64,000 nucleotides of DNA from Tubulanus polymorphus (Eukaryota > Animalia > Nemertea): positions 1,240,001 to 1,304,000 of the forward strand of contig NC_134029.1 in NCBI RefSeq assembly GCF_964204645.1, written 5' to 3'. Both the position numbers and the translations under genes were made by a program. Under the pieces are notes generated by a model, which did no database searches, was not told the origin of the DNA, and worked only from the letters and a program-made list of their open reading frames with translations. Position 1 is the stretch's first letter. The number at the start of each line of letters is the position of its first letter. Shown here one piece after another: positions 1,083 to 64,000 of the stretch.

Positions 1083-3289
1083 ACCTAGAGATTTAATCCA
1101 GTGACCATAAATCATCACTGATTTAAAAAAACTGCAGTTCGTTCTGTTTTCTTCGACTTGTTGTTTTTATAGATCAAGCTCTGATAAAATCAAATACGTT
1201 CTACACAACTCTCCTTGACACGTAGATTAATCGATTGTGAAAACTCCTCGTGGTTACTGTAGTTAACGGCAGGGATTTCAATCGTATTCTTTTCTTTCAA
1301 CTCGATAATTCCCACGAAAGACCAATACACATTAATCTTGAAATTCATCGATTGAAATAGGAGTTGTTATCTCGATGAAATACTCTGTCCGTGTAAGCTG
1401 TAACGATAAAATCACACTAGAAAAACTTATAGTCTGAATACTTTACTTGTGGTAATATTTACTCAACCTTTCAATATTCCTGAAGAAAGAATAATAGTCG
1501 AAACGTCGAGTGAAATATTAGCTCGAGGAAGTTATGCTGTTCTATTGTGGGATTTCAACATACATATGAGAACATTCTTCCACCTGACATTTTTTTCCAA
1601 ATCCACAATTCCGGGAAATAACGGTACATGGTAAGACTTGTCTATTTTTGAATTCTGAGAATTTGAGCTGAGTAACTGCGACGTCAAGCTTTTCTAGGAA
1701 TTATCACACGAACAAACGTTGACCATTTGTGTTATATTTTCATCTTATAAATGACGAACTTATGAATATTTTCCGCTGTGTTCTGTAAGGAGTTCGCCAT
1801 CAGTGATCGTTTTACCATCATTCGTGCAGCACAAGATGTTGAACGATACTCTCCGTGATTATGACTGATGGACGTTTAAGCCACTCGTGTTCAGATGACG
1901 GAAAAAAAACATCTAGAACACAATCGAAAGGTTGTCATCGAACACAGGGTAATATCCGGTTAACTGTTTGACAGGGGGGGGGGGCATTTCGATCGGTCGA
2001 ATGTGACGATATACGAAGATAGCACAGTGACAGGGTTTAATCAACTGGAAAGATTAATCTGCGTCTATCGCTTGTGGCTATTCCGTAAAAAGTGATAATA
2101 CGCATGGAATAAACCGGTGTTCATGAGGGATATTGTGGTAGCACAGTCTTGACCTAAGTTCAAAGATTGTCCTTAAATCATATGTAAAACTGTCTTCAGT
2201 TGTAGATTGGCTATAGAACCGGAGTGAGAGACTGCTTTCATATTGTTCGATTGATTATAGAATCAAAATTAGTTTAGACTGCTGTTGAATATTGTTGTTA
2301 GATTGTTTATAGAACCAAAATGAGCTTTGAATGATCTTAAAATCATTACATATATATAATATTGTTTAACGAACTCAAATTAGCTCGTTTCGGCGCTGTT
2401 TCCAAACTAGGTGGCTTAACCGGAAAACAGAGAATTTAATTTTTGAAATCTATTCTTCAATTGCACAATAATTGTGCATCAGCAAACTAGACTGCTATCT
2501 GTTTTAGTGGTATCATATGGCTGTGGTCTAATATAATACCTTGTCGCTAGGATATGATATTTGCAGCTGTGAGTGGTGTGGTGTATGTAGGGGAAGCTAC
2601 TAATGGTTCTGATTTATGGTTTGATTGTCGCAAATCTCGTCGATATAAACAGATTTATGCGGTTATCATAACGAATAAGCACCTGGTTTGTTACAGCGTC
2701 TGAGAGAGCGGTCGTTTTTTTTTTCATTTTCGACCTTCAGAACTTGAGAGCATATTCTAAATACTAACAAACAAACTTCACCCAGATACTACATTCTTGA
2801 AATTCAAAAGCAGCAACTGAATTTTATTGAATGTAATCACATTACAAAATTGCACCCGCTCTCCGTTATGATATGAACAGAAAACGAACGAATTAAACAC
2901 AGTAACGTAAAGCTACACATTTCATCAGATGATGAAAAAATTCGCTCAGCCTCCCGATAATTCGTATAGTGAAGACATAAAGATCAGTAGAAGTTTTAGT
3001 GTTTCAGCGAATGGTGAATTTATCAGATTATCTGCCATTATTTCTATATCTCCGCGTACGATGTTACATCGTGAAATATGCAAACGGTTCCCGAGGGGAA
3101 AAACAGAATCAGAGTCGAATATCAGAATTTTCTTATCTTTCTTATACAGAATCATAACGAGATATGAATGATGATAAACCCTCTCTGAACGTCCGATACA
3201 CCACCCGCCCAGCAGGAGGTGATTTAGGATTTTGGTGGTGCAGAGAATATGGGCGGTTCGGGGGTTCATTTTCTAGTCCCAAGACTTTA

Positions 3290-3406
3290 CAGGATCCAGT
3301 TCCACTGTCGTGAGTTAGAGATAACACTGAGTTCAAGTTGTTAGTTTTTCAATGACTTAACTTTGTTGAGTCAAATCTTAACTCACAACTGTGGAACTGG
3401 GTCCAG
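3290..3406. mobile_element. MITE, probably PIF/Harbinger-type (family A)
   Basis: TIRs GATCCAGTTCCAC / GTGGAACTGGGTC flanked on both sides by CAG (3-bp TSD). Related copies near 8301-8396, 8960-9058, 21619-21729, 27418-27530, 35222-35383, 43739-43830 and 54560-54612. Confidence 0.75.
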
Positions 3407-4561
3407 GTGTCTCCTTTTCGGAAAAGCCTGGCGTTAGGCGTGAGTGGTGCGAGTTTGTCAGGGAGTTTACCGTAGAACTCCTGAATAAAGGATGAATGCA
3501 AAATATGATAAACGTTGATTTGCACCACTTGCACTGAACCTGAAATAATCACAGAGTCTTATCACAGCTTCAATGTGATTAAATTCCACCAGTCACGGAT
3601 AAGATTAAGGATTGAGGCAATCGACTGAATTGACAATTATTGTCTCGAAGATAAACTGCATTTTTCACTCCGTATTGAGAGGTTCTTATTTTATCTTTAC
3701 AGCGGCTCCATTATCCAGTGTGGTTATTGAACCATGACCTGACAGGTCAGCAGTATACACGCGAGGTGTCGTCGTGGTCACTCTGGGGACTTCAATTAAC
3801 GCAACAGAATTATTCACGATCATTTTAGTAGAAGTTTCGGCGGCACCCGCCGATCCGATATCAACCAAACAACAAGATTCATCTACAAACCCTCAACAGA
3901 ATTAGACTCCGCGTCGGAATCCGGCATTTTCGCGGATGCGTCGTCACGCATTGTCTCGCGAGAACTAACAGAGCATCGTTGCTTCTTGCCCACAGCTGAC
4001 TATTGTGAACAGCTCAGGATGGACCGCGTGCGCGGTGCTGCGAGATGGACTGGAAAGAGTTAATTTCACCATTAAACTCTACTACAACAACCACCTAACA
4101 TTAACGAATAAAATACCTGTAGCGCTCGCGAGCTCTCGACTCTCTGTCAGAATATTACTGATCTACCCTGGATTTATCAGTAATGGATGATCTTTTCTAT
4201 TAACGCTGTGAATTCCTACTAAGCCGCTGTTGAATGTAAGAGGCTTACTGCTGGTCGGGATTGTAACGTATTCACAAGACGATTAGGATTAAGTGTTTTG
4301 TCATCGTAAAGTAGACAGGTTCCAAATCAGAGAGAGAAAGAGTTCTAAATAGGAATGATCAACTTTATCAAGTGCGCGGCATATAGAGTCTGCAAAAACA
4401 CCGGTTCTTACAGTCATAACGCGATTAACTACAGAGGTTCACCTGACGGTGGAATGAGGGATATAATAATTTTTCCGTTGCTTGTGGTCGGTCTTTTGTA
4501 AAAATATGAATCGTATATTTACGCAGTTTCGATAAAACCGTGAGAAATAATTCCAATAAAT

Positions 4562-5770
4562 ATGGTTGAAATGAATTGTTCGCGAATTGTGAATCAATCG
4601 CAATTAATCACGGTTAACAATGAATACGCCTCGATGATGATTCCCTATCTGGTATATATAAGCGTTGTGATGGTTTTAGGTATCGCCGGTAACGCTATCG
4701 TTTTACTCGTTTACGGAACGAAGGCGAAAAAAATCACGTTGAATTATTTCGTGATAACGCTAGCGATTTTCGATCTGTTAACGTGCATCGTTTCGTTCCC
4801 GTTTAACATTCTACGCACGGCGATGCAGTTTACGTTCCCGTCTGAGGTTTTTTGTAAGATCGGATTTTTATCGCTGTATATGACTGTATCGGCCGCTTCG
4901 TTCATTCTGATATGCATCGCAGTTCATCGTTACAACAAAGTATGTCGTCCTCTGAAACGAGGCTTCGACGACAAAATGGCGAAACGGTTGTGTTACGCGT
5001 CATTTCCGGTCGGGCTCTGCGTCGCTGTACCGACTGCTCTGATATTCGGGTTGGCCACCAGGAGGGATAAAAAAACTGGAATTTGCGGTCGCGAATGCTT
5101 CATCAAAGACGAATATGAACGAACTGCTACTTTAATAGTTTTCTTCGTGATATTATGTATAATTTTCATCGGTTTGGTGGTTACAGTATCTGTGTTGTAT
5201 ATACTGGTCGGTAAGGTGGCTTACATCCGCAGAAATAACAGAAATCAACAGAATCAGATACAACTGAGGCGATATCAATTAACCACTAGCGCCGATGCGT
5301 TGGACGGTTCGAACCCCGACGTACGGGCGGCGAGTAACGGTACCAGAAACAGTTTACACCCAGCCGTCGACGTCGACGGGCGAGAAAATAATGATAATCA
5401 GTTTTTAGATTTATCGCGTGAACGAAGCCAAGATTCGAAACGTTCAGCGGCAAGTGAGGCTCCAAGCGAATACAAATCGTGGAATTCGCGTTTAATCCTG
5501 TTTAAAACTGAACGCATGTTGTTAGCAGTGACTGTCACATTTATTCTGTGTTGGTTACCGTTTTGGGTGTTCATTTCCGGTACAGTATTGAACGGTAACT
5601 TCCTGCAACCCGAAACGCCATTTCAGCACATCATCAGAAAAGTGTTCTACGAAGCGTTTTACTTTAATAACGCGATAAACCCGGTGATTTATGCCTTCAT
5701 GAACAGCGCGTTTAGAGATGATTTCAGACGGTTATCAATTCAATGGTGTCGTCGTCCACCTCGTGTTTAA
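4562..5770 (+). CDS. Intronless class A (rhodopsin-like) GPCR, peptide-receptor/CCK-receptor-like
   Basis: 402-aa ORF with 7 TM segments: GN in TM1, LAIFD in TM2, HRY in place of DRY, CWLP in TM6, NPVIY in TM7, long ICL3. Confidence 0.93.
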   Translation: MVEMNCSRIVNQSQLITVNNEYASMMIPYLVYISVVMVLGIAGNAIVLLVYGTKAKKITLNYFVITLAIFDLLTCIVSFPFNILRTAMQFTFPSEVFCKIGFLSLYMTVSAASFILICIAVHRYNKVCRPLKRGFDDKMAKRLCYASFPVGLCVAVPTALIFGLATRRDKKTGICGRECFIKDEYERTATLIVFFVILCIIFIGLVVTVSVLYILVGKVAYIRRNNRNQQNQIQLRRYQLTTSADALDGSNPDVRAASNGTRNSLHPAVDVDGRENNDNQFLDLSRERSQDSKRSAASEAPSEYKSWNSRLILFKTERMLLAVTVTFILCWLPFWVFISGTVLNGNFLQPETPFQHIIRKVFYEAFYFNNAINPVIYAFMNSAFRDDFRRLSIQWCRRPPRV

Positions 5771-6408
5771 ATCATACACACACTACATTCACAATAGCTT
5801 TTTCACATCTTTACCGAATACTTTATTTTCATCTTTAATATCTGTGTTTAACTCTTGAATATTGTAAAACCGAGAAAAATAATTGATAAGTATCATTTGA
5901 AATAGACGATTTTTGATATAAAGTTGCTCGATGATTATTTCTCTTGCTGATCGTGGCTCCTTTTTAATCGACTGTATGAGGATAAAATGCGTCACTTTAT
6001 CTCCCCACAGAACGAGGCGACTGACTGATAGTAGATTTTCATTGTGTGTGATGTTGACGTGTAACTTTTGAAGAGCGACAAAGAATCCCCAATCCTCCCA
6101 TTTCACTTACGCTAAAAAGCCATCACAAAACATCGTTTACTTCGGAGATTTTACTGAAAGTTCTCCTCTCTTCGATGTAATCGGCGTGATGTCGCCCTCT
6201 AATGTAAAACACGAGAATCATTTCAAAAGTTACAATTATTTCTTTGCGTGAAATTACGTTCCCAGATCGCGTTTATTTTCGTGACAGCGAAAAATTTATT
6301 TCGTTCCCACGGAAAAATGTTTATTTTTCACCATTTCACCTCCGGGCCTCTGTACATTCGAATACGACAATGAAATATTACAAAACGTCTCACAGAAATC
6401 CGAGCGGT

Positions 6409-7380
6409 TCATGACGAAGAAAACATCTTTTTCAAAGTGTTACGAACTTCTTTCCCGGTGAAAAGATACAGATAGAAATTCACTGAGTAGTTAAAGGCGT
6501 GTAGGGTAGACGCGTATTGATACGGGAGAACCATATATCTACCCCAGCCAGGTACCATCGATAGACTTACCACCAGTGATACCGGTAATGACGTAGCCAG
6601 GAAACAGAAACAAACGGTCAACACCATCACCGTTACTTGATTCGTGTTGGTTTTCGATTTGTTCGAGTTCATCTCGTTTCTGGTGAGCGTAAAAATGATC
6701 CCGAAAGACAGAGTTAGAAGTAGCACGGCGGGAAGATACTGTCCGATTATACCGAGGTATGTATACCACGTGTAGGCTATCGGAGCAATCCCGCATTGAT
6801 TACCGCTCATATTCATATGAGTGATTTCGATTAACAGAAACGAATACACGACGGAAACTACTCCGACCGAAACGATGATGATGACGGTCGTGATCGAGGA
6901 CGTCCAGAAACGAGGACCCGCGAACGGGAATCGTACGACGCAAAATCGTTCAGCGGCGACCAGTATGAGTAATATCGGACTCACTACGCCGCTGACTACG
7001 AAAACATATTCCTGTAATTTACAGGCGAAAGCGGACGAACTTTCGATACAAATTACGCCGTAAATATCAGCGCAAACCGTATTCACAAACATGCATAGAT
7101 GGAGACATAAGAAAGCGGTGTCGGAAACGGCCAACGATACGAAAAAACGACTGTACGACATACGTCTCATATTGGGCCGCGACATGACCGCGACCACCAG
7201 CAAGTTACCGATAAAACCTAACGACAATTCGCTGCTCGTAACGGCGTAGAAGAACCACCGAAAAACAATATCACGTGACTGTAACGGGTTGATATCTTTA
7301 ATCACGTAGAAATAGGGAAATATGACTGAAACAGTCGTCGTGGTCGAGGTATCGTTGGCACGATGCTGTTCGTCGTTCAT
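6409..7380 (-). CDS. Intronless class A GPCR, FMRFamide-receptor/srw-like orphan
   Basis: First ATG at 7380; GN, LAVSD, ERF and NYSVNFYLY motifs; 7 TM segments; distantly similar to the 22-34 kb GPCR paralogs. Confidence 0.9.
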   Translation of the reverse strand: MNDEQHRANDTSTTTTVSVIFPYFYVIKDINPLQSRDIVFRWFFYAVTSSELSLGFIGNLLVVAVMSRPNMRRMSYSRFFVSLAVSDTAFLCLHLCMFVNTVCADIYGVICIESSSAFACKLQEYVFVVSGVVSPILLILVAAERFCVVRFPFAGPRFWTSSITTVIIIVSVGVVSVVYSFLLIEITHMNMSGNQCGIAPIAYTWYTYLGIIGQYLPAVLLLTLSFGIIFTLTRNEMNSNKSKTNTNQVTVMVLTVCFCFLATSLPVSLVVSLSMVPGWGRYMVLPYQYASTLHAFNYSVNFYLYLFTGKEVRNTLKKMFSSS

Positions 7381-40971: not shown

Positions 40972-43900
40972 TCACACCTGATTCAACATGGCCGCCAATA
41001 ATTCATACTGAAAATAAAACAATTCATTATACGTACTACATTTAGAAAGATACCATTCATAACTTTAAAATTTATTGTAGAAAAACAGGTAAAAAAGAAC
41101 AGCGAATTCATTGCTTAATTCGTCGTAGGTGTGCGAATCATTTTTTTGACAACTCATCCAAATTACGACTTACAACTAGCAAATTGAATTATAAATCCAA
41201 ATTGGGATTCCAGAAACTTATCAAAATGAGAACTAAAGCGAGTTTGACCTCAACATTGTAGCGAATATTTACCTCTTTCTGCTTTTCTTGTTCTTCATGA
41301 ATCAATTCATCCAGAACGTCTTGGAATCTTTGCTGAAACACAAACACAACATTCAATAAATTTCCGACGATTGAATTTCTAAATGAGATTCAGCGAATTC
41401 TATTATTACCCGTAAAGCCAGATTATCAATGGCTGAGATTTCTGCCTCTTGTTTCTGGCGCTGTTCTTTTAATTCTTGAAGCTGTTGACCCAATTCTGAC
41501 AATTTCATCTCCAACTCAGCTACGGAAAAACAAAGAAATAAATCTGTTTTAAAATCATTTCTTACGGATTAAGAATTTCAGATTCGTGTTTATGATTCTT
41601 ACTGTTATCGACCGACATTTGTGATACATCGAGGTCGTCAGTTTGTGGAACGGTTTCATCTCTTACAGCCCCTCCTCCTTCTTCATCATCTTCACTATCC
41701 ATAATATTCACATCTTTATCATCATCTTCCTCTTCACTACTGCTCACTTCACCGAATATATGCTCAGCTATGGAAACAAATGGACATTAATAATAAAACT
41801 CGAGAATGAACCAAAGGAGTTAAGATCCCTAGAACTCAATTCGGATCTTTTGACTTGAGAGTGATATCTGAGTTTGATCGTACAGTAGACTCCGCTCAAG
41901 TCTGATCTTTTGACTTGAGAGTGATATCTGAGTTGGATGGTACAGTAGACTCCGCTCAAGTCTGATCTTTTGACTTGAGAGTGATATCTGAGTTTGATGA
42001 TACAGTAGACTCCGCTCAAGTCTGATCTTTTGACTTGAGAGTGATATCTGAGTTGGATGGTACAGTAGACTCCGCTCAAGTCTGATCTTTTGACTTGAGA
42101 GTGATATCTGAGTTTGATGATACAGTAGACTCCGCTCAAGTCTGATCTTTTGACTTGAGAGTGATATCTGAGTTTGATGATACAGTAGACTCCGCTCAAG
42201 TCTGATCTTTTGACTTGAGAGTGATATCTGAGTTTGATGATACAGTAGACTCCGCTCAAGTCTGATCTTTTGACTTGAGAGTAATATCTAAGTTTGATGA
42301 CACAGAAGACTCCGCTCAAGTCTGATCTTTTGACTTGAGGGTTATATCTGAGTTGGATGGTACAGTAGACTCCGCTCAAGTCTGATCTTTTGACTTGAGA
42401 GTTATATCTGAGTTGGATGGTACAGTAGACTCTGCTCAAGTCAGATCTTTTGACTTGAGAGTTATATCTGAGTTGGATGATACAGTAGGAAAAAATAAGT
42501 CCGGCTTGAGAACTTCATGTTTTGTTGGTCGAGCTGATAAGATCTGATTGGAGCAGAGTCTATTGAAGCAGTGATTAGTATATTTTACCGAGGTTAGTGC
42601 TGCTGTCAGCGTGAGATATTACACTCGGTTCATTCGTTGTTTCTCCTTTTAATCTTTCACCGGGAGCCGAATCATCGTCATAAATTATTTCCCATTTAAC
42701 ATCAATAGCTTCGTTATCAGCGCGGAATAAACGCTTCACTTCCTTCTCAATATCCGGCTGTTCTGTGTACTAGAAACAATAATCAGTGAAAATACTGCGA
42801 TAGAGAGGAGGGTGGCATTATTACCCAAATAAACTGAAGGGACACATCATTACGGTATCCAGGCAAACTGACATCATTCAAATAAACATCATAAGTAAAT
42901 TACCACATGAAAATCCCATTAAAACTTACATTTTTCTGTAGAGTTTTTCTGAATCGTTTTTTTCTGACGTTTTTTAGGGGTGGAGTAACTGAAATAATAA
43001 CAGTATGTTTAATACAGAGAGCGTACTGTGCAGGTACACGGTGTACTACTGTGCAGGTACATGGTGTACTACTGTGCAGGTATAAGGTGTACTACTGTGC
43101 AGGTACACGGTGTACTACTGTGCAGGTACACGGTATACAACTGTGCAGGTACACGGTGTACTACTGTGCAGGTACACGGTGTACTACTGTGCAGGTACAC
43201 GGTGTACTACTGTGTACCCGGTAGGTACACGGTGTACTACTGTGCAGGTACACGGTGTACTACTGTGCAGGTACACGGTGTACTACTGTGTACCCGGTAG
43301 GTACACGGTGTACAACTGTGCAGGTACACGGTGTACTACTGTGCAGGTACACGGTGTACTACTGTGCAGGTACACGGTGTACTACTGTGTACCCAGTAGG
43401 TACACGGTGTACTACTGTGTACCCAGTAGGTACACGGTGTACTACTGTGCAGGTACACGGTGTACTACTGTGTACCCGGTAGGTACACAGTGTACTTCTG
43501 TGTAACCGGTAGGTACACGGTGTACTACTGCGCAGGTACACCGTGTACTACTGTGCAGGTACACGGTGTGCGTGGTGTTCTATAGGCCTAATACTGACGT
43601 CCGTGAGGATAGCGAAATTTTCTATCTTTATCTTTGTCTTTTTTCGATTGAGTTTCTTCATCAGCGCTGTCACTTGTATCAGCATCTTCTTTACACAATA
43701 ACATCTAAAACACAAACACACACGTACATTAAACACTTGATCCAGTTTCACAGTTCAGGAATCATCCGAGGTTTTAAATCGGTTCATTAGTCAAATTTCA
43801 ACCCAGAAAATTCTGTGGATCTAGGTCCTGAATATATCAGTGATTTCAATATTTACCTGGCAAATATCAGCAGTTTTATAAAATGTTTTTTTATCCGTGG

Positions 43901-58386: not shown

Positions 58387-58652
58387 AGGAATCGTAAATT
58401 GAATTCAGCTATATCAGTAGTTTATTCATTGTGTGTTAGCAAAAAACGATTTTTTTGTAATTTTTTTCATGTAAATAAAAATGTACATAGTGATAGCATA
58501 TAATTGTAATGTTCTGCTGACTGTAGTTCTTCTGATTAGTTGGAGAGTGCCTGGATGTTTGGATAGAGAAAAGCATCAAACCAACAACAAAAAAACGATA
58601 TTCTTAGTATGGACTTTCCTAAATTTACACGATGATGTACCGTCTAATCCAG

Positions 58653-58798
58653 TATGGAAGCCCCTAGGTGACATGGGATAATTTTTTTCACAATTTCGAC
58701 TTATTATGTCAAATTTCGAGATAATAAGTCGAAATTTGACATAATAAGTCGAAATTGTGAAAAAATTATCTCGTACATGTCACCTAGGGGCTTTCGTA
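58653..58798. mobile_element. TA-flanked palindromic MITE
   Basis: TA-TGGAAGCCCCTAGGTGACATG ... CATGTCACCTAGGGGCTTTCG-TA with internal inverted AATTTCGACTTATTATGTC units. Confidence 0.8.
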
Positions 58799-59252
58799 AG
58801 TACCGGTATCAAAATTAAAGGAAATAATGTGCTTTTCAAATGAATTAGGAGTGGCAAGCATGAAGTTTCTGGCGGGATTTCGGATGATGCTTCAAGTAAT
58901 TAAAAACAGCCTAATATGTCTCCCGGCCTCATCAATGGAATCAGGGAAGTGTCTCTCATTATACACTTCCCTAATTGAACCAAGAAGTTTTTTTAATTGA
59001 AAACTCGGGATCTCCGTGATAACCGTATGAATGATGATTAATCACGAGATGGTAGTGCCAGGGTTTTCCCTAATGACTCAAATAGCACTTTCCACGTGCA
59101 TGGTGTGAACTACACGTTTTTTTACCAGGCGGCGGCTAAATTCGGAGAGGGAAGCTGTTGGGAATCAAGTAATTTATTTTATGGCCTTAATAAAGTTCCA
59201 CGATATTGTATAGCTGGCTACACTGGCGCGTATTCAACCCAGTGGAACCTTC

Positions 59253-59260
59253 TATATAAG
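59253..59260 (+). promoter_or_regulatory. Candidate TATA box for a + strand spliced non-coding transcript
   Basis: TATATAAG with Inr-like CCATT motifs ~25 nt downstream; strong + strand splice acceptors follow. Confidence 0.35.
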
Positions 59261-59626
59261 CTCTCAATGTAAATCCATTCCATAGAGACACAATTGCGGC
59301 TATTCAGAGTTGTTGATATCATTTATACGGGCTATTGAATACGTCACCGGCTGACCACGGTGTACACAAGCATAGACCATTCACCTCCGCTCTCTCACAC
59401 TGTGCAGACATGCTACCGTGGATTCTCCTCCTGGCGATTTTCGCTGCGCTCCCGCTCCTGCTCCTGTTCCTGCTTCCTGAGGAACGACGTCTTTATGTTT
59501 TATGTGTTACTGTTCGTCTCTGTGCTGTCCTGTACTGTTCCGTGTTTATTAACCCGTTCTTTTTTGCAGGTTCTAACCCGTTTTATTTTTCAGGGCCGAT
59601 TTCTCTGTCGAATTTCAATGTTTTCA

Positions 59627-60401
59627 GGAACAAAACTAATGTCCGAAAGCGTCGGCTCTCCTTCGCCGGTCACGTCTCGAGGATGTCAGACAAAGAGTCG
59701 GTCAGGAAATTCTGCCCTCTACGCGCCCTCATACGGAACACGAAAACCAGGATGACGAGGCCTCACTGCCCCCACCTATCTGCAAAGTGTGCTGAGTGAT
59801 GTCAATGACGGGCATATCTGTGAGATTGCACGGGATACAAATGGAGCGGTTATACTGGATTGTCACGCTACTAGCATTCATTGTGTCCTTGTGACCGCCC
59901 GGATGAGGGATGATTCTACTGTCACGCTCTTTGTTTCTGGTATTCTGAGTCGGCTGAGGGATGATTCTACTGTCACGCTCTTTGATTTCTAGTTTGAGTG
60001 CTAGTTTTCATTGTGTCCTTGTGACAACCCCGGTCAGTGGATGAAGTCTCTTGTCGGCTTGTGAGTGTTAGTTTCATTGTGTCCTTGTGACAACCCGGTC
60101 AGTGGATGAAGTCTCTTGTCACGCTTTTGAGTGCTAGTTGAGATCCTGAATCTCAACCCGGTCAAGCTGGTTGTACTGCGCTATTTGTGTTTCGTGCAAT
60201 TTTACAGGTGTGTCCGTTTCTGACGTCGCCCAGTACATCCTGCAGTTAGATGGGGAATGTGAGGCGTCGTCATCCTGGTTTTCGCATTCTGTGTGAGGGC
60301 GTGTAGAGGGCAGTATATTCCTGGCTGGCTCTTTGTCTGGTGTTCTCGGCATGTGACCGGCGACGGAGAGCTGAAAAGCTTTCGAACATTAGTTTTGTTC
60401 C
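59627..60401 (+). mobile_element. Inverted duplication of a decayed non-LTR retrotransposon ORF2 3' fragment (arms ~59627-59880 and ~60128-60401)
   Basis: Translations VRKRRLSFAGHVSRM and (frameshifted) YAPSYGTRKPG resemble the post-RT C-terminal RRLxxxGHxxR...RxxGRP region of RTE/L2-like LINEs; the right arm is the diverged reverse complement; the loop carries short direct repeats. Confidence 0.75.
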
Positions 60402-60954
60402 GTACCAGGTTTTCATCGCTCTTCTCTTTTTTTTTCATTTCAGGACTCCCAAGAAGTTGAAGAAGAAGATGGTAGAAGGCGACTACAGAAGATGCCGAAA
60501 AAAGAATAGTGAACTCCGCAATCTTGAAAGTTAAGTTGATTCACATATAAATTAGGATTAATGATGAAGAAATGTGTGACTACAAAATGTTTTTCTTTTT
60601 CTCAATTTCAGCTTCGACGACACCCAAGAAGACAAAGAAGTACTTCGATTTTGAAAAAAGATTAAGTAAAATCGACCGACGATCACGCAACTATATCTGT
60701 ACTTCGATTTCCAAAAAAAATTAGACAAAATTATCTTCATCCTTGTAAACTTTTGGACTACTTATATGAAAAAAAAGACCAAATATTGTAAAATTATCGA
60801 AAAAAAATGATGTAAATTCGACCGACGATCACATAACTATATCTGTACTTCGATTCCCGCCTGTTTCGCTCCTGGCAGGTGTATCACGATCGTAAGGGAC
60901 ACCAACTCAAAAGTCAAACGCGAGCTCATCAACTAAGATCTGCCGATTAGAGAA

Positions 60955-62790
60955 CAGTGCACAGAAGGGGCCAATTTGGATGAAACTCAACCAACCAACT
61001 TAGGAGATCCTCCGATAATGAACCCAGCCATCATAAAAGGTAATTTGATATTTGATACGAACTTAGAACATTTTAACCGATACTGAACCCAGCAAACTTG
61101 AAATGTGATTGGCTGTTTGTTGGATATTCCGGAAATTCCGGGAACTTCTGATGTAATTGGGAAAGCCCATTGGGAAAACCCAATGTGGAACCCAAAACAA
61201 AATGGCGAGCATTTCATTCGACTAGGTATCGTATCGTAGGCTATTCTAGGTATATTATTTATGGAAATTATTATGATAAATTCTAAATGAAATATTTTGT
61301 CATTACAGGATATCTTCTTTTAATCATTGCAGCTTAATTTAAACTATAAGAAAAAAACCCAGCTTGAGATCAACTACTCGTCCAAAATCGACCAACTGGA
61401 ACAGCGCACAGATGAGGCCAGCTAACTAACCAACTAATAGGATAATCCCCGATAACCAAGCAATCATAAAAGGTAACTTGATATACATGGAATTATTTCG
61501 ATAAATTCTAAATGAAATATTTTGTCATTACAGGATATCTTCTTTTAATCATTGCAGCTAAATTTCAACTATAAGAAAAAACCCAGCTTGAGATCAACTC
61601 CTCTTCCAAAATCGACCAACTGGAACAGCGCACAGATGAGGCCAACTAACTGACCAACTAATAGGATAATCGCCAATAACCAAGCAATCATAAAAGGTAA
61701 CTTGATATACATGGAATTATTTCGATAAATTCTAAATGAAATATTTTGTCATTACAGGATATCTTCTTTTAATCATTGCAGCTAAATTTCAACAATGAGA
61801 AAAACCCAGTTTGAGATCAACTACTCATCCAAAATCGACCAACTGGAACAGGGCACAGATGAGGCCAATTAGAATCCAACTTTTCAACCAACAAACTTAA
61901 GATGATCCACGCCAATAACGAACCAAGCAATCATTAAAGGTAACTTGATATACATGAAATTATTTTGATTAATTCTAAATGAAATATTTTGTCATTACAG
62001 GATATCTTCTTTTAATCATTGCAGCTAAATTTCAACTATGAGAAAAACCCAGTTTGAGATCAACTACTCGTCCAAAATCGACCAACTGGAACAGGGCACA
62101 GATGAGGCCAACTAACTAACCAACTAATAGGATAATTGCTGATAACCAAGCAATCATAAAAGGTAACTTGATATACATGGAATTATTTCGATAAATTCTA
62201 AATGAAATAGTTTTCATTACAGGATATCTTCTTTTAATCATTGCAGCTAAATTTCAACTATAAGAAAAAACCCAGCTAAATTCAAACTCGTCCAAAATCG
62301 AAAAGCACAGATGAGGCCAACTAGAATCCAACTTATCAACAAACAAACTTAAGATGATCCACGCCGATTATGGACAAAGCAATCATTAAAGGTAACTTGA
62401 TATACATGGAATTATTTCGATAAATTCTAAATGAAATATTTTTTTCATTACAGGATATCTTCTTTTAATCATTGCAGCTAAATTTCAACAATGAGAAAAA
62501 CCCAGTTTGAGATCAACTACTCGTCCAAAATCGACCAACTGGAACAGGGCACAGATGAGGCCAACTAACTAACAAACTAATAAGATAATCGCTGATAACG
62601 ACCCAAGCATAAAAGGTAACTGGATATATGTGGAATTATGTCGATAAATTCTAAATGAATTCAACTATAAGAAAAAACCCAGCTTGAGATCAACTACTCG
62701 TCCAAAATCTACAAACTGGAACGGTGCACAGAAAAGATCAGAACTGAACCCAGCAATCTTTAAAGGTAAGTTGATATACATGAAATTACC
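60955..62790 (+). repeat. ~223-243-bp tandem repeat (about 6 full units plus partials), each with splice-like donor and acceptor
   Basis: AGGTAA recurs at 61471, 61695, 61938, 62161, 62390, 62614 and 62764; full units have CATTACAG and TCTTTTAATCATTGCAG; no + strand ORF of 60 aa or more. Confidence 0.92.
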
Positions 62791-63204
62791 TGTATATAGA
62801 AATTTCAGTCCTCATATGAACATCATTTCATAAGTGGCTATCATCAAAATCTATTTACCGGTCCACATGGCTGAACTTTTATCTTCACTAGTCTTAAACA
62901 GTGATGAACTAGTCCTACTACTGCAATTAATTATTGGGGTTTAAATCAGCAATTGACGTCAATGAATTTTACTTTGTGAAAAACAGGGTGGCTTGTAATT
63001 TTAAATGACATGTAAATTATGATAAATCTGTCTGAAATGTTTTGCTTTCTTCACTAATTTGTTTCAGCCAAACTACATCTCGGAAAAATTGGCCTGAAGA
63101 AGACACTCACAAGTAGATGAATACTGATCGACCCATTTTTAGAAGTTGAGGAGCCAGCAACGGATTAATCACTTAACGATGGATTCTTCTACAATCGGTG
63201 GTTG

Positions 63205-63425
63205 ATTTCTATAAAACATTTTATCAGGAGCAGCAGAGACAAAAGTGTATCTTATAAACATTGATTCGAGCAGCAAAACTAATGGATTATTTCATAAACA
63301 CTGGATTCAGGATAAACATTTTTCTAAAAGCAGCTAAGACAATAGTGTATCTTATCAGGAGCAGCATAAACAATTGTGCATCTTATAAACAGTGAGATCC
63401 AGGAGCAGCGAAGACGATAGTGGAC
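63205..63425. repeat. Degenerate ~45-bp tandem repeat
   Basis: Recurring CAGGAGCAGC..AGACAATAGTG..TCTTATAAACA blocks. Confidence 0.6.
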
Positions 63426-64000
63426 TTCTGAAGTAAAGACAGTATTGATTTTTTTTTACTTACCACCCTTTTTCGAACCAGTATGATGGATAATAAAGCG
63501 TATTTGAGGAAACTATTTTATGATGTGTTATGCAATGTGAGAGTCTAATAAAAGCTAAGCTCCATTAATTCACGATATTGGTATTCGATCCTTGGTTAAT
63601 AGACGAGTCAATTTAGGTTAGTGACTAGGGGTAAATGGTCGCGTCGAGCGCCTAGTTTGGACTCGTAGGTCTGTTGAGTTAACTCCTCAACTGAGATATA
63701 GTTTCAACATGATATTGTGAGTTTAATCTTCGTGCTTACCATAGTTAAACAAAGTTAACCTTACGCTTTCCAGAGTGAGTGAATTTGTAGCTTAATGTTT
63801 TTATTTTGAACTGTTTTTAAATAACTCATTTTAGCAGGGTATAATTGTGTAAGAATAAAACGACATACACGTTCGTAGGATCTTCCAGTTTGAATTTGTG
63901 GTTTTTATGTTGGAGACTTTTTTGAACTGAGGGACTTCCTCGAGTACATAAATACCTGTCATTTAGGTATAAATATTGTTGCGGGGATAAAACGACATGT

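Follow-up and report, generated by a model that had tools for sequence, protein, structure and literature searches.

Inverted duplications of transposon fragments that give double-stranded RNA are known from the endo-siRNA inverted repeats of mouse oocytes and from maize Mu killer, and in both cases the RNA acts on an extant, closely matching transposon family. Another kind of structured RNA is found in the stem-loops of LINEs and SINEs that are recognized by reverse transcriptase; these are cis-acting elements, short and placed at the 3′ end. For spiralian animals, to our knowledge, there are almost no functional data on small RNAs or transposons. In Drosophila, hpRNA loci such as hp-CG4068 and the D. 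simulans Nmy/Tmy suppressors are present singly or in small numbers in the host genome, with a recognizable target and proven Dicer-2 siRNAs (see also PMC10292708, PMC10317233). Furthermore, hairpins engineered to contain 18 to 26% G:U pairs still gave effective RNAi while their DNA inverted repeat was broken (PMC9263138).

The present study concerns positions 59627-60401 in a 64,000-nucleotide stretch of DNA from the nemertean Tubulanus polymorphus, hereafter the window. The original prediction, made from the letters of the window, took this segment for a LINE-derived host hairpin locus, rich in G:U pairs on the + strand and possibly silencing its parent LINE family. Our literature search found no report of such a repeat family, nor of nemertean small RNAs bearing on it. 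The analysis reveals a conserved, strand-specific, and compensated long stem inside a multi-copy non-coding repeat.

Results

A repeat search returned two collinear inverted-repeat blocks, 59709-59850/60175-60316 (142 nt, 77% identity) and 59652-59708/60318-60374 (57 nt, 79%), and the arms align end to end; the long inverted repeat is thus borne out. The hairpin spans 775 bp, with arms at 59627-59850 and 60175-60401 and a centre of 324 nt. Local alignment of 59627-59850 with the reverse complement of 60175-60401 gave, for the + strand RNA, 177 Watson-Crick pairs, 28 G:U pairs, 9 A:C mismatches, and 10 transversion mismatches; the corresponding numbers by global alignment were 183, 30, 9, and 15. 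The predicted count of about 30 G:U against about 9 A:C was accurate (28 to 30 against 9), with a binomial p of ~0.001 to 0.003 for the arms of the window copy (p = 0.001 for the global alignment). The wobbles occur in both orientations, 18 with G in the left arm and U in the right and 12 with U in the left and G in the right.

Folding of both strands, as proposed in the original prediction, gave a single rod of −450.6 kcal/mol (z = −26) for the + strand RNA and −341.1 kcal/mol (z = −18) for the − strand RNA. The longest unbroken + strand helices measured 38, 34, and 27 bp. In these predicted folds, and in a consensus fold with 205 pairs on the + strand, a long inverted repeat folds in one transcript strand, as in hpRNAs. 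A long hairpin that makes sense only as + strand RNA is supported by the recurrence of the G:U excess in all five subfamilies, by the joint changes at paired positions, and by the symmetry of the substitution spectrum, all described below.

Such a stem could be a source of hairpin-derived endo-siRNAs, with Dicer cutting the + strand rod and the siRNAs, at the level of the family, targeting either a related retroelement or transcripts of the repeat itself; the original prediction would thereby pass from a single host gene to a repeat family. The length of the stem with its unbroken helices and the strong + strand polarity of folding speak for this reading, as do the Pol II-like signals on the + strand. 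Since RNAi remains effective at 18 to 26% G:U (PMC9263138), the ~13% G:U of the present stem is also compatible with Dicer processing.

Across the whole 268-Mb assembly, the 775-base hairpin has at least 40 full-length matches of 97 to 98% identity, located on all large contigs and on both strands. An arm 25-mer searched genome-wide with up to 3 mismatches matched 127 times in forward and 125 times in reverse orientation, which implies ~125 hairpins. The sequence on both sides of the hairpin was constant in 30/30 fetched copies and there was no target-site duplication; therefore, the hairpin is an internal part of something larger. Indeed, the copies are collinear for more than 9 kb, and the hairpin has a fixed place within a dispersed, non-coding repeat of more than 10 kb (a lower bound, as the compared stretches end inside the unit) with ~125 copies. 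Apart from the frame that runs into the left arm, the large repeat contains no ORF above 110 aa, and neither LTRs nor terminal repeats of the large unit were found within 10 kb. Its 5′ extent differs between copies, and internal tandem arrays are present. The notion of a host hairpin locus is thus not supported, since the predicted locus is one of ~125 dispersed copies, 97 to 98% identical and with conserved flanks, and we advise against annotating 59627-60401 as a host gene for a hairpin RNA.

These flanks bear directly on a further explanation, in which a DNA transposon of the foldback or MITE type, 775 bp long and bounded by conserved terminal inverted repeats of 24 bp, is nested in the larger repeat. 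In its favour, the outer 24 bp of each arm hardly vary in any subfamily, as would be expected of ends bound by a transposase. However, the same flanks lie on both sides in all 30 copies and in all copies examined from the deep subfamilies, the junctions carry no target-site duplication (...TTTGCT/GGAAC ... GTTCC/GTACCAGG..., slashes marking the ends of the unit), and no hairpin copy was seen outside the larger repeat. The constant flanks largely refute recent mobility of this kind, and we regard the explanation as highly improbable. A SINE-like, LINE-dependent retroposon does not fit either, the LINE-derived pieces being internal and 6 to 8 kb from the shared 3′ region; there was no poly(A) at 63621, where the homology of the window copy ends. 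A retrozyme or viroid-like rod was likewise set aside, as no self-cleaving ribozymes were found flanking the rod: hammerhead or other ribozymes gave no Rfam match at E ≤ 0.01 in three copies (L001, L035, and L037) and none at gathering score in the window. Neither Rfam nor ARAGORN recognized a known RNA family or a tRNA in the module.

The window copy of the large repeat occupies 58586-63621 on the + strand, as defined by blastn against the fuller copy L035. When the window and the DNA downstream of it were compared by blastn, the copy matched 226-8053 of L035 but lacked ~2227-6630, an internal loss of ~4.4 kb; it is an ordinary member of the family that has suffered an internal deletion and is now decaying. 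Its upstream part contains a perfect palindrome at 58683-58765 (37-nt arms, 9-nt spacer) with sub-threshold Rfam matches to MITE-derived plant miRNA families, which looks like a small MITE-type insert. Elsewhere in the window, minisatellite-like arrays lie at 41768-42439 and 43110-43505; their reading frames are open and repetitive, with units such as SGVYCTIQLRYHSQVKRSDL.

A pyrimidine-rich 5′ flank (59410-59626) precedes the hairpin in all subfamilies, at 85 to 92% identity in most comparisons and at 85 to 91% between subfamilies over the last 100 nt before the stem. In four subfamilies, a frame at 59410-59799, starting MLPWILLLAIF..., is open all along this flank; in the remaining one the ATG is missing. 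Its indels come in multiples of three, and its differences are spread evenly over codon positions with no codon-position signature, which speaks against a coding reading of the frame that enters the left arm. Its openness probably reflects the pyrimidine-rich composition and not coding.

On the other side of the hairpin, a T-rich tract (60402-60443) directly adjoins the right arm and ends, 42 nt further on, in an AG (60442-60443) that resembles a 3′ splice site; it is found in all five subfamilies at 87 to 97% identity. It is followed by an exon-like stretch and then a donor-like GTTAAGT (60444-60529), the donor-like site being kept in subfamilies A to D. Further downstream, the motif TCGACCGACGATCAC..CTATATCTGTACTTCGATT is present twice in 60640-60860, and 60640-60796 is 83 to 84% identical between the deepest subfamilies, better conserved than the arms. 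Repeat analysis and comparison with L035 show that 61261-62659, still inside the large repeat, consists of 224-bp (453-bp) units in tandem; each unit has acceptor-like and donor-like sites, and the number of units differs between copies. A second acceptor-like site, TTTGTTTCAG (63058-63067, AG at 63066-63067), is kept in 5/6 other copies compared. G+T richness is limited to the right arm and the centre, and the downstream unit is A-rich.

The proposed + strand transcription signals fared unevenly. The acceptor-like sites at 60443 and 63067 and the AATAAA at 63547-63552, which lies ~70 nt before the homology end, are common to other copies. The TATA-like motif at 59253-59259 is found in only 4/30 copies, most being deleted there, and the acceptor-like AG at 59626-59627 is confined to the window copy and one other, most copies having TTTGCT.

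The diverged hairpin copies define five subfamilies, A to E, each represented at every site by the majority state of its 1 to 31 copies; the window copy belongs to A. Between subfamilies, arm identity is 67 to 85% (a difference of 15 to 33%), and each subfamily keeps ~165 to 178 Watson-Crick pairs, with 22 to 32 G:U against 6 to 14 A:C. The G:U sites are often common to subfamilies (12 of ~30 between A and E); the A:C sites almost never are. RNAalifold on 17 copies gave −211.8 kcal/mol for the + strand and −128.5 kcal/mol with 138 pairs for the − strand. At 44 of the 205 + strand consensus pairs, both sides have changed and pairing is kept, transversion types such as A:U to C:G included.

Double changes at paired sites are 3 to 4 times commoner than expected. 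Between A and E there are 24 against 13.5 expected (Fisher p = 2e-4), half of them (12/24) replacing one Watson-Crick pair by another, and the excess stays when CpG-context sites are removed (13 against ~6.7). Shifting the partner by 1 to 5 columns gave 10 to 21 double changes and only 0 to 3 kept pairs. With the ancestral pair state taken as the state common to at least three other subfamilies, the inferred Watson-Crick ancestors underwent 92 one-sided and 23 two-sided changes, where ~6 to 8 two-sided changes were expected, and 18 of these 23 restored a Watson-Crick pair.

Conservation is distributed unevenly over the module. The outer 24-bp stem (59627-59650 on the left, 60378-60401 on the right) is 92 to 100% identical across A to E, and the apical region or loop (59851-60174), with its internal repeats (a 66-nt unit present 2.2 times; TTCATTGTGTCCTTGTGAC motif), is 95 to 98% identical in A to D. 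The remaining arms, at 67 to 85%, are the least conserved part. We infer that the stem is kept as structure, that its base and centre are sequence-specific parts, and that the + strand is the meaningful strand. In four copies of subfamily E (L056, L057, L063, and L066), which have retained the stem and its base, the apical region is replaced by an unrelated array of ~5 repeats with a palindromic core AACTAGTTAAC.

Transcription-associated mutational asymmetry, present equally in unpaired flanks, had been named in the original prediction as another possible origin of the bias. To polarize the arm differences we used parsimony over the subfamilies, the parent LINE not having been found. The subfamily-specific + strand substitutions were C>T 45, G>A 39, A>G 33, and T>C 38 in the arms and C>T 61, G>A 32, A>G 43, and T>C 74 in the flanks and centre. 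The sum of C>T and A>G against that of G>A and T>C was 78:77 in the arms and 104:106 in the unpaired sequence. Such a strand-symmetric spectrum in arms and flanks means that mutational bias does not explain the G:U excess, and transcription-associated asymmetry was rejected as its cause. The same counts disposed of ADAR-type editing fixed through retrotransposition: A>G shows no excess over T>C in the arms (33 against 38), where the original prediction had suggested looking for A-to-I editing, and C>T gave rise to G:U pairs (24) besides A>G (17), a mixture that an ADAR footprint does not explain.

Changes of Watson-Crick pairs led to G:U in 41 cases and to A:C in 25, a difference that is marginal by itself (p = 0.06). 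Changes that would otherwise have given A:C fall disproportionately on existing G:U pairs and turn these back into Watson-Crick pairs. Purifying and compensatory selection on + strand pairing fits this pattern; a mutational bias does not.

Could the same pattern arise with no RNA function at all? The hairpin would then be an old inverted duplication of a LINE fragment hitch-hiking in the repeat, with arm similarity from conversion or template switching at the quasi-palindrome and a G:U excess that is a mutational or sampling effect. The arm-to-arm divergence of ~23% is near the 15 to 33% seen between subfamilies, as expected if a perfect repeat had decayed neutrally in a star-like manner; conversion tracts could account for double changes such as CGAAAAC to GCAAAC, present in both subfamily E arms; and the ~3.5-fold excess of private changes per site in the arms over the centre hints at a DNA-level process. 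However, nothing in conversion or template switching would make G:U commoner than A:C on one strand of the element, yet the bias is present in every subfamily; the symmetric spectrum leaves no mutational asymmetry to invoke; and G:U sites are common to subfamilies where A:C sites almost never are. In other words, a DNA-level process can mimic compensation but not a one-strand wobble bias, and we consider the absence of an RNA function very unlikely.

Among the near-private changes of 31 young subfamily A copies, 26 led to G:U, 16 to A:C, and 18 to a transversion mismatch; the ratio of 26 to 16 is not significant and, coming from 31 of ~125 copies, not decisive. Altogether 60 private changes lose a Watson-Crick pair and 9 restore one. 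This predominance of pair-breaking changes fits decay after insertion, with the structure kept only in lineages that found new copies. A host locus would exist in one or a few copies under selection at that locus; here, there are ~125, and the young ones are losing pairs. In these 31 copies the density of private substitutions, transversions included, is 0.18 per site in the arms and 0.05 per site in the apical region, a ~3.5-fold difference. An apparently lower diversity of the hairpin than of its flanks was discounted, as the 30 main-family copies had been picked by hairpin similarity, which biases comparisons of diversity within the family.

The arms themselves point to a retroelement. In the sense direction the left arm reads ...NKTNVRKRRLSFAGHVSRM... 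and then, past a frameshift, ...YGTRKPG*RGLT...EIARDTNGA; the right arm gives the same reading on the opposite strand, so that the arms read as ...RRLSFAGHVSRM... and ...YGTRKPG.R.LT..., which we take to be the C-terminal tail typical of non-LTR retrotransposon ORF2 proteins. An unbroken 57-aa stretch of the right arm of a deep subfamily had 34 matches among 1.84 billion proteins (E 1.4e-6 to 1e-3), mostly short unnamed animal proteins. DUF6451 was present in 2/10 scanned matches, ~85 residues upstream of the matching part, and in one Atlas cluster 76% of the members carry DUF6451 and 35% carry RVT_1. A direct link of the arm reading frame to RVT_1 was not found in the 57-aa search and the 10 matches scanned. 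Pfam gave no match for four ORF pieces, and Atlas returned only unnamed clusters for the arm piece. Thus, the arms are probably retroelement-derived, two inverted fragments of an ORF2 tail, the left one (59627-59850) being its sense copy and the right one (60175-60401) the antisense copy.

The LINE derivation put forward in the original prediction is therefore probable from the arm reading, the 34 protein matches, and the DUF6451/RVT_1 cluster, but no parent was found in the genome. Genome-wide searches with 28-aa and 35-aa arm pieces and with the degenerate 25-mer (up to 3 mismatches) found no free-standing parent LINE. All 25-mer matches among those listed were at hairpin arms. The two arm-piece searches gave 150 scored matches each, read as hairpin copies at or beside known hairpin coordinates, and all 24 weaker matches that were fetched (24/24) proved to be diverged copies of the hairpin-bearing repeat. 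With no free-standing parent, no trans target is visible, and the genome searches returned nothing of near-perfect complementarity to the arms other than the arms. The idea that the hairpin silences its LINE family is not supported by these searches. Moreover, arms that are the fastest-evolving part of the module fit poorly with siRNAs tracking a fixed target.

For the endo-siRNA reading as a whole, these observations weigh against the folding evidence. No free-standing LINE or other near-identical target was found genome-wide; the arms evolve fastest while the apical region and the stem base are conserved, which a pure siRNA precursor does not need; and ~125 dispersed copies, the young ones decaying, are not a host locus. 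We regard an endo-siRNA source as possible but unlikely.

Discussion

We favour as rather likely the explanation that the hairpin is a conserved structured-RNA module of a large, gene-like dispersed repeat with at least five subfamilies, its pairing kept in the spreading lineages, and that it may act in cis in the repeat's transcript. The module would have been born from two inverted pieces of a retroelement ORF2 tail, as the protein matches make probable. In the spreading lineages, the + strand transcript would have kept a stem of ~225 bp, ~77% Watson-Crick and ~13% G:U; changes that preserved pairing would have persisted or been compensated, and changes giving A:C would not have persisted. 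The stem base and the apical region would be constrained as sequence. The strand-specific compensation suggests that the module acts as RNA in that transcript.

As to what it does there, the role that we would name first, and hold tentatively, is that of a cis-acting double-stranded rod in the repeat's own predicted Pol II transcript, in an intron-like position before the conserved acceptor-like site. This is a guess from the sequence conservation of base and centre and from the position beside a splice-like site. Such a rod would present the conserved apical region and might be needed for processing, stability, or propagation of the transcript; Dicer products may be a by-product or a second function.

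Some points count against the favoured explanation. Correlated changes in the arms could also arise by arm-to-arm gene conversion or DNA-level template switching, and the lineage-specific bias taken alone is marginal (41 against 25). An alternative that we judge improbable puts the hairpin at the heart of a non-coding unit, mobile or amplifying, of a kind not described before. Such a unit would need its long, wobble-rich double-stranded rod in order to spread, the rod being perhaps a handle for a reverse transcriptase or a dsRNA-binding protein; otherwise, the hairpin might be an element-borne hpRNA that suppressed a parent LINE of which no free copies are left. A rod of this kind would likewise have a sequence-specific base and an apical domain.

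If the explanation by a family-level structured-RNA module is true, compensatory evolution has maintained an RNA stem of 225 bp in a repeat with over 100 copies while the arms diverged by up to a third. Evidence of this kind, for a long double-stranded RNA under selection in a spiralian animal, would be rare, and the hairpin would also be a natural counterpart to engineered G:U hairpins.

Compared with the Drosophila hpRNA loci, the worm hairpin shares a long imperfect inverted repeat that folds in one transcript strand, an origin by inverted duplication of a fragment of another element, and Pol II-like signals on the folding strand. In contrast to those few host loci with their targets and siRNAs, the worm hairpin has ~125 dispersed copies inside a non-coding repeat and no detectable target; furthermore, its centre and stem base are conserved in sequence. 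The likeness to the mouse-oocyte repeats and to Mu killer lies in the inverted duplication of a transposon fragment, but no free parent of the worm stem was found, and the stem appears to be kept by compensatory change and not by identity to a target. With the LINE and SINE 3′ stem-loops it has in common a structure kept by covariation in a repeat family and a LINE derivation. Unlike them, the worm stem is ~225 bp long and internal, comes from coding-region sequence, and has no partner LINE that we could find. The engineered G:U hairpin transgenes of Zhong et al. 2022 (PMC9263138) resemble it in that G:U pairs keep the RNA duplex and break the perfect DNA inverted repeat, which offers a rationale for a wobble bias on one strand. 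Those constructs were designed, with all C in the sense arm changed to T, whereas the wobbles of the worm hairpin are natural and lie in both arms (18 + 12).
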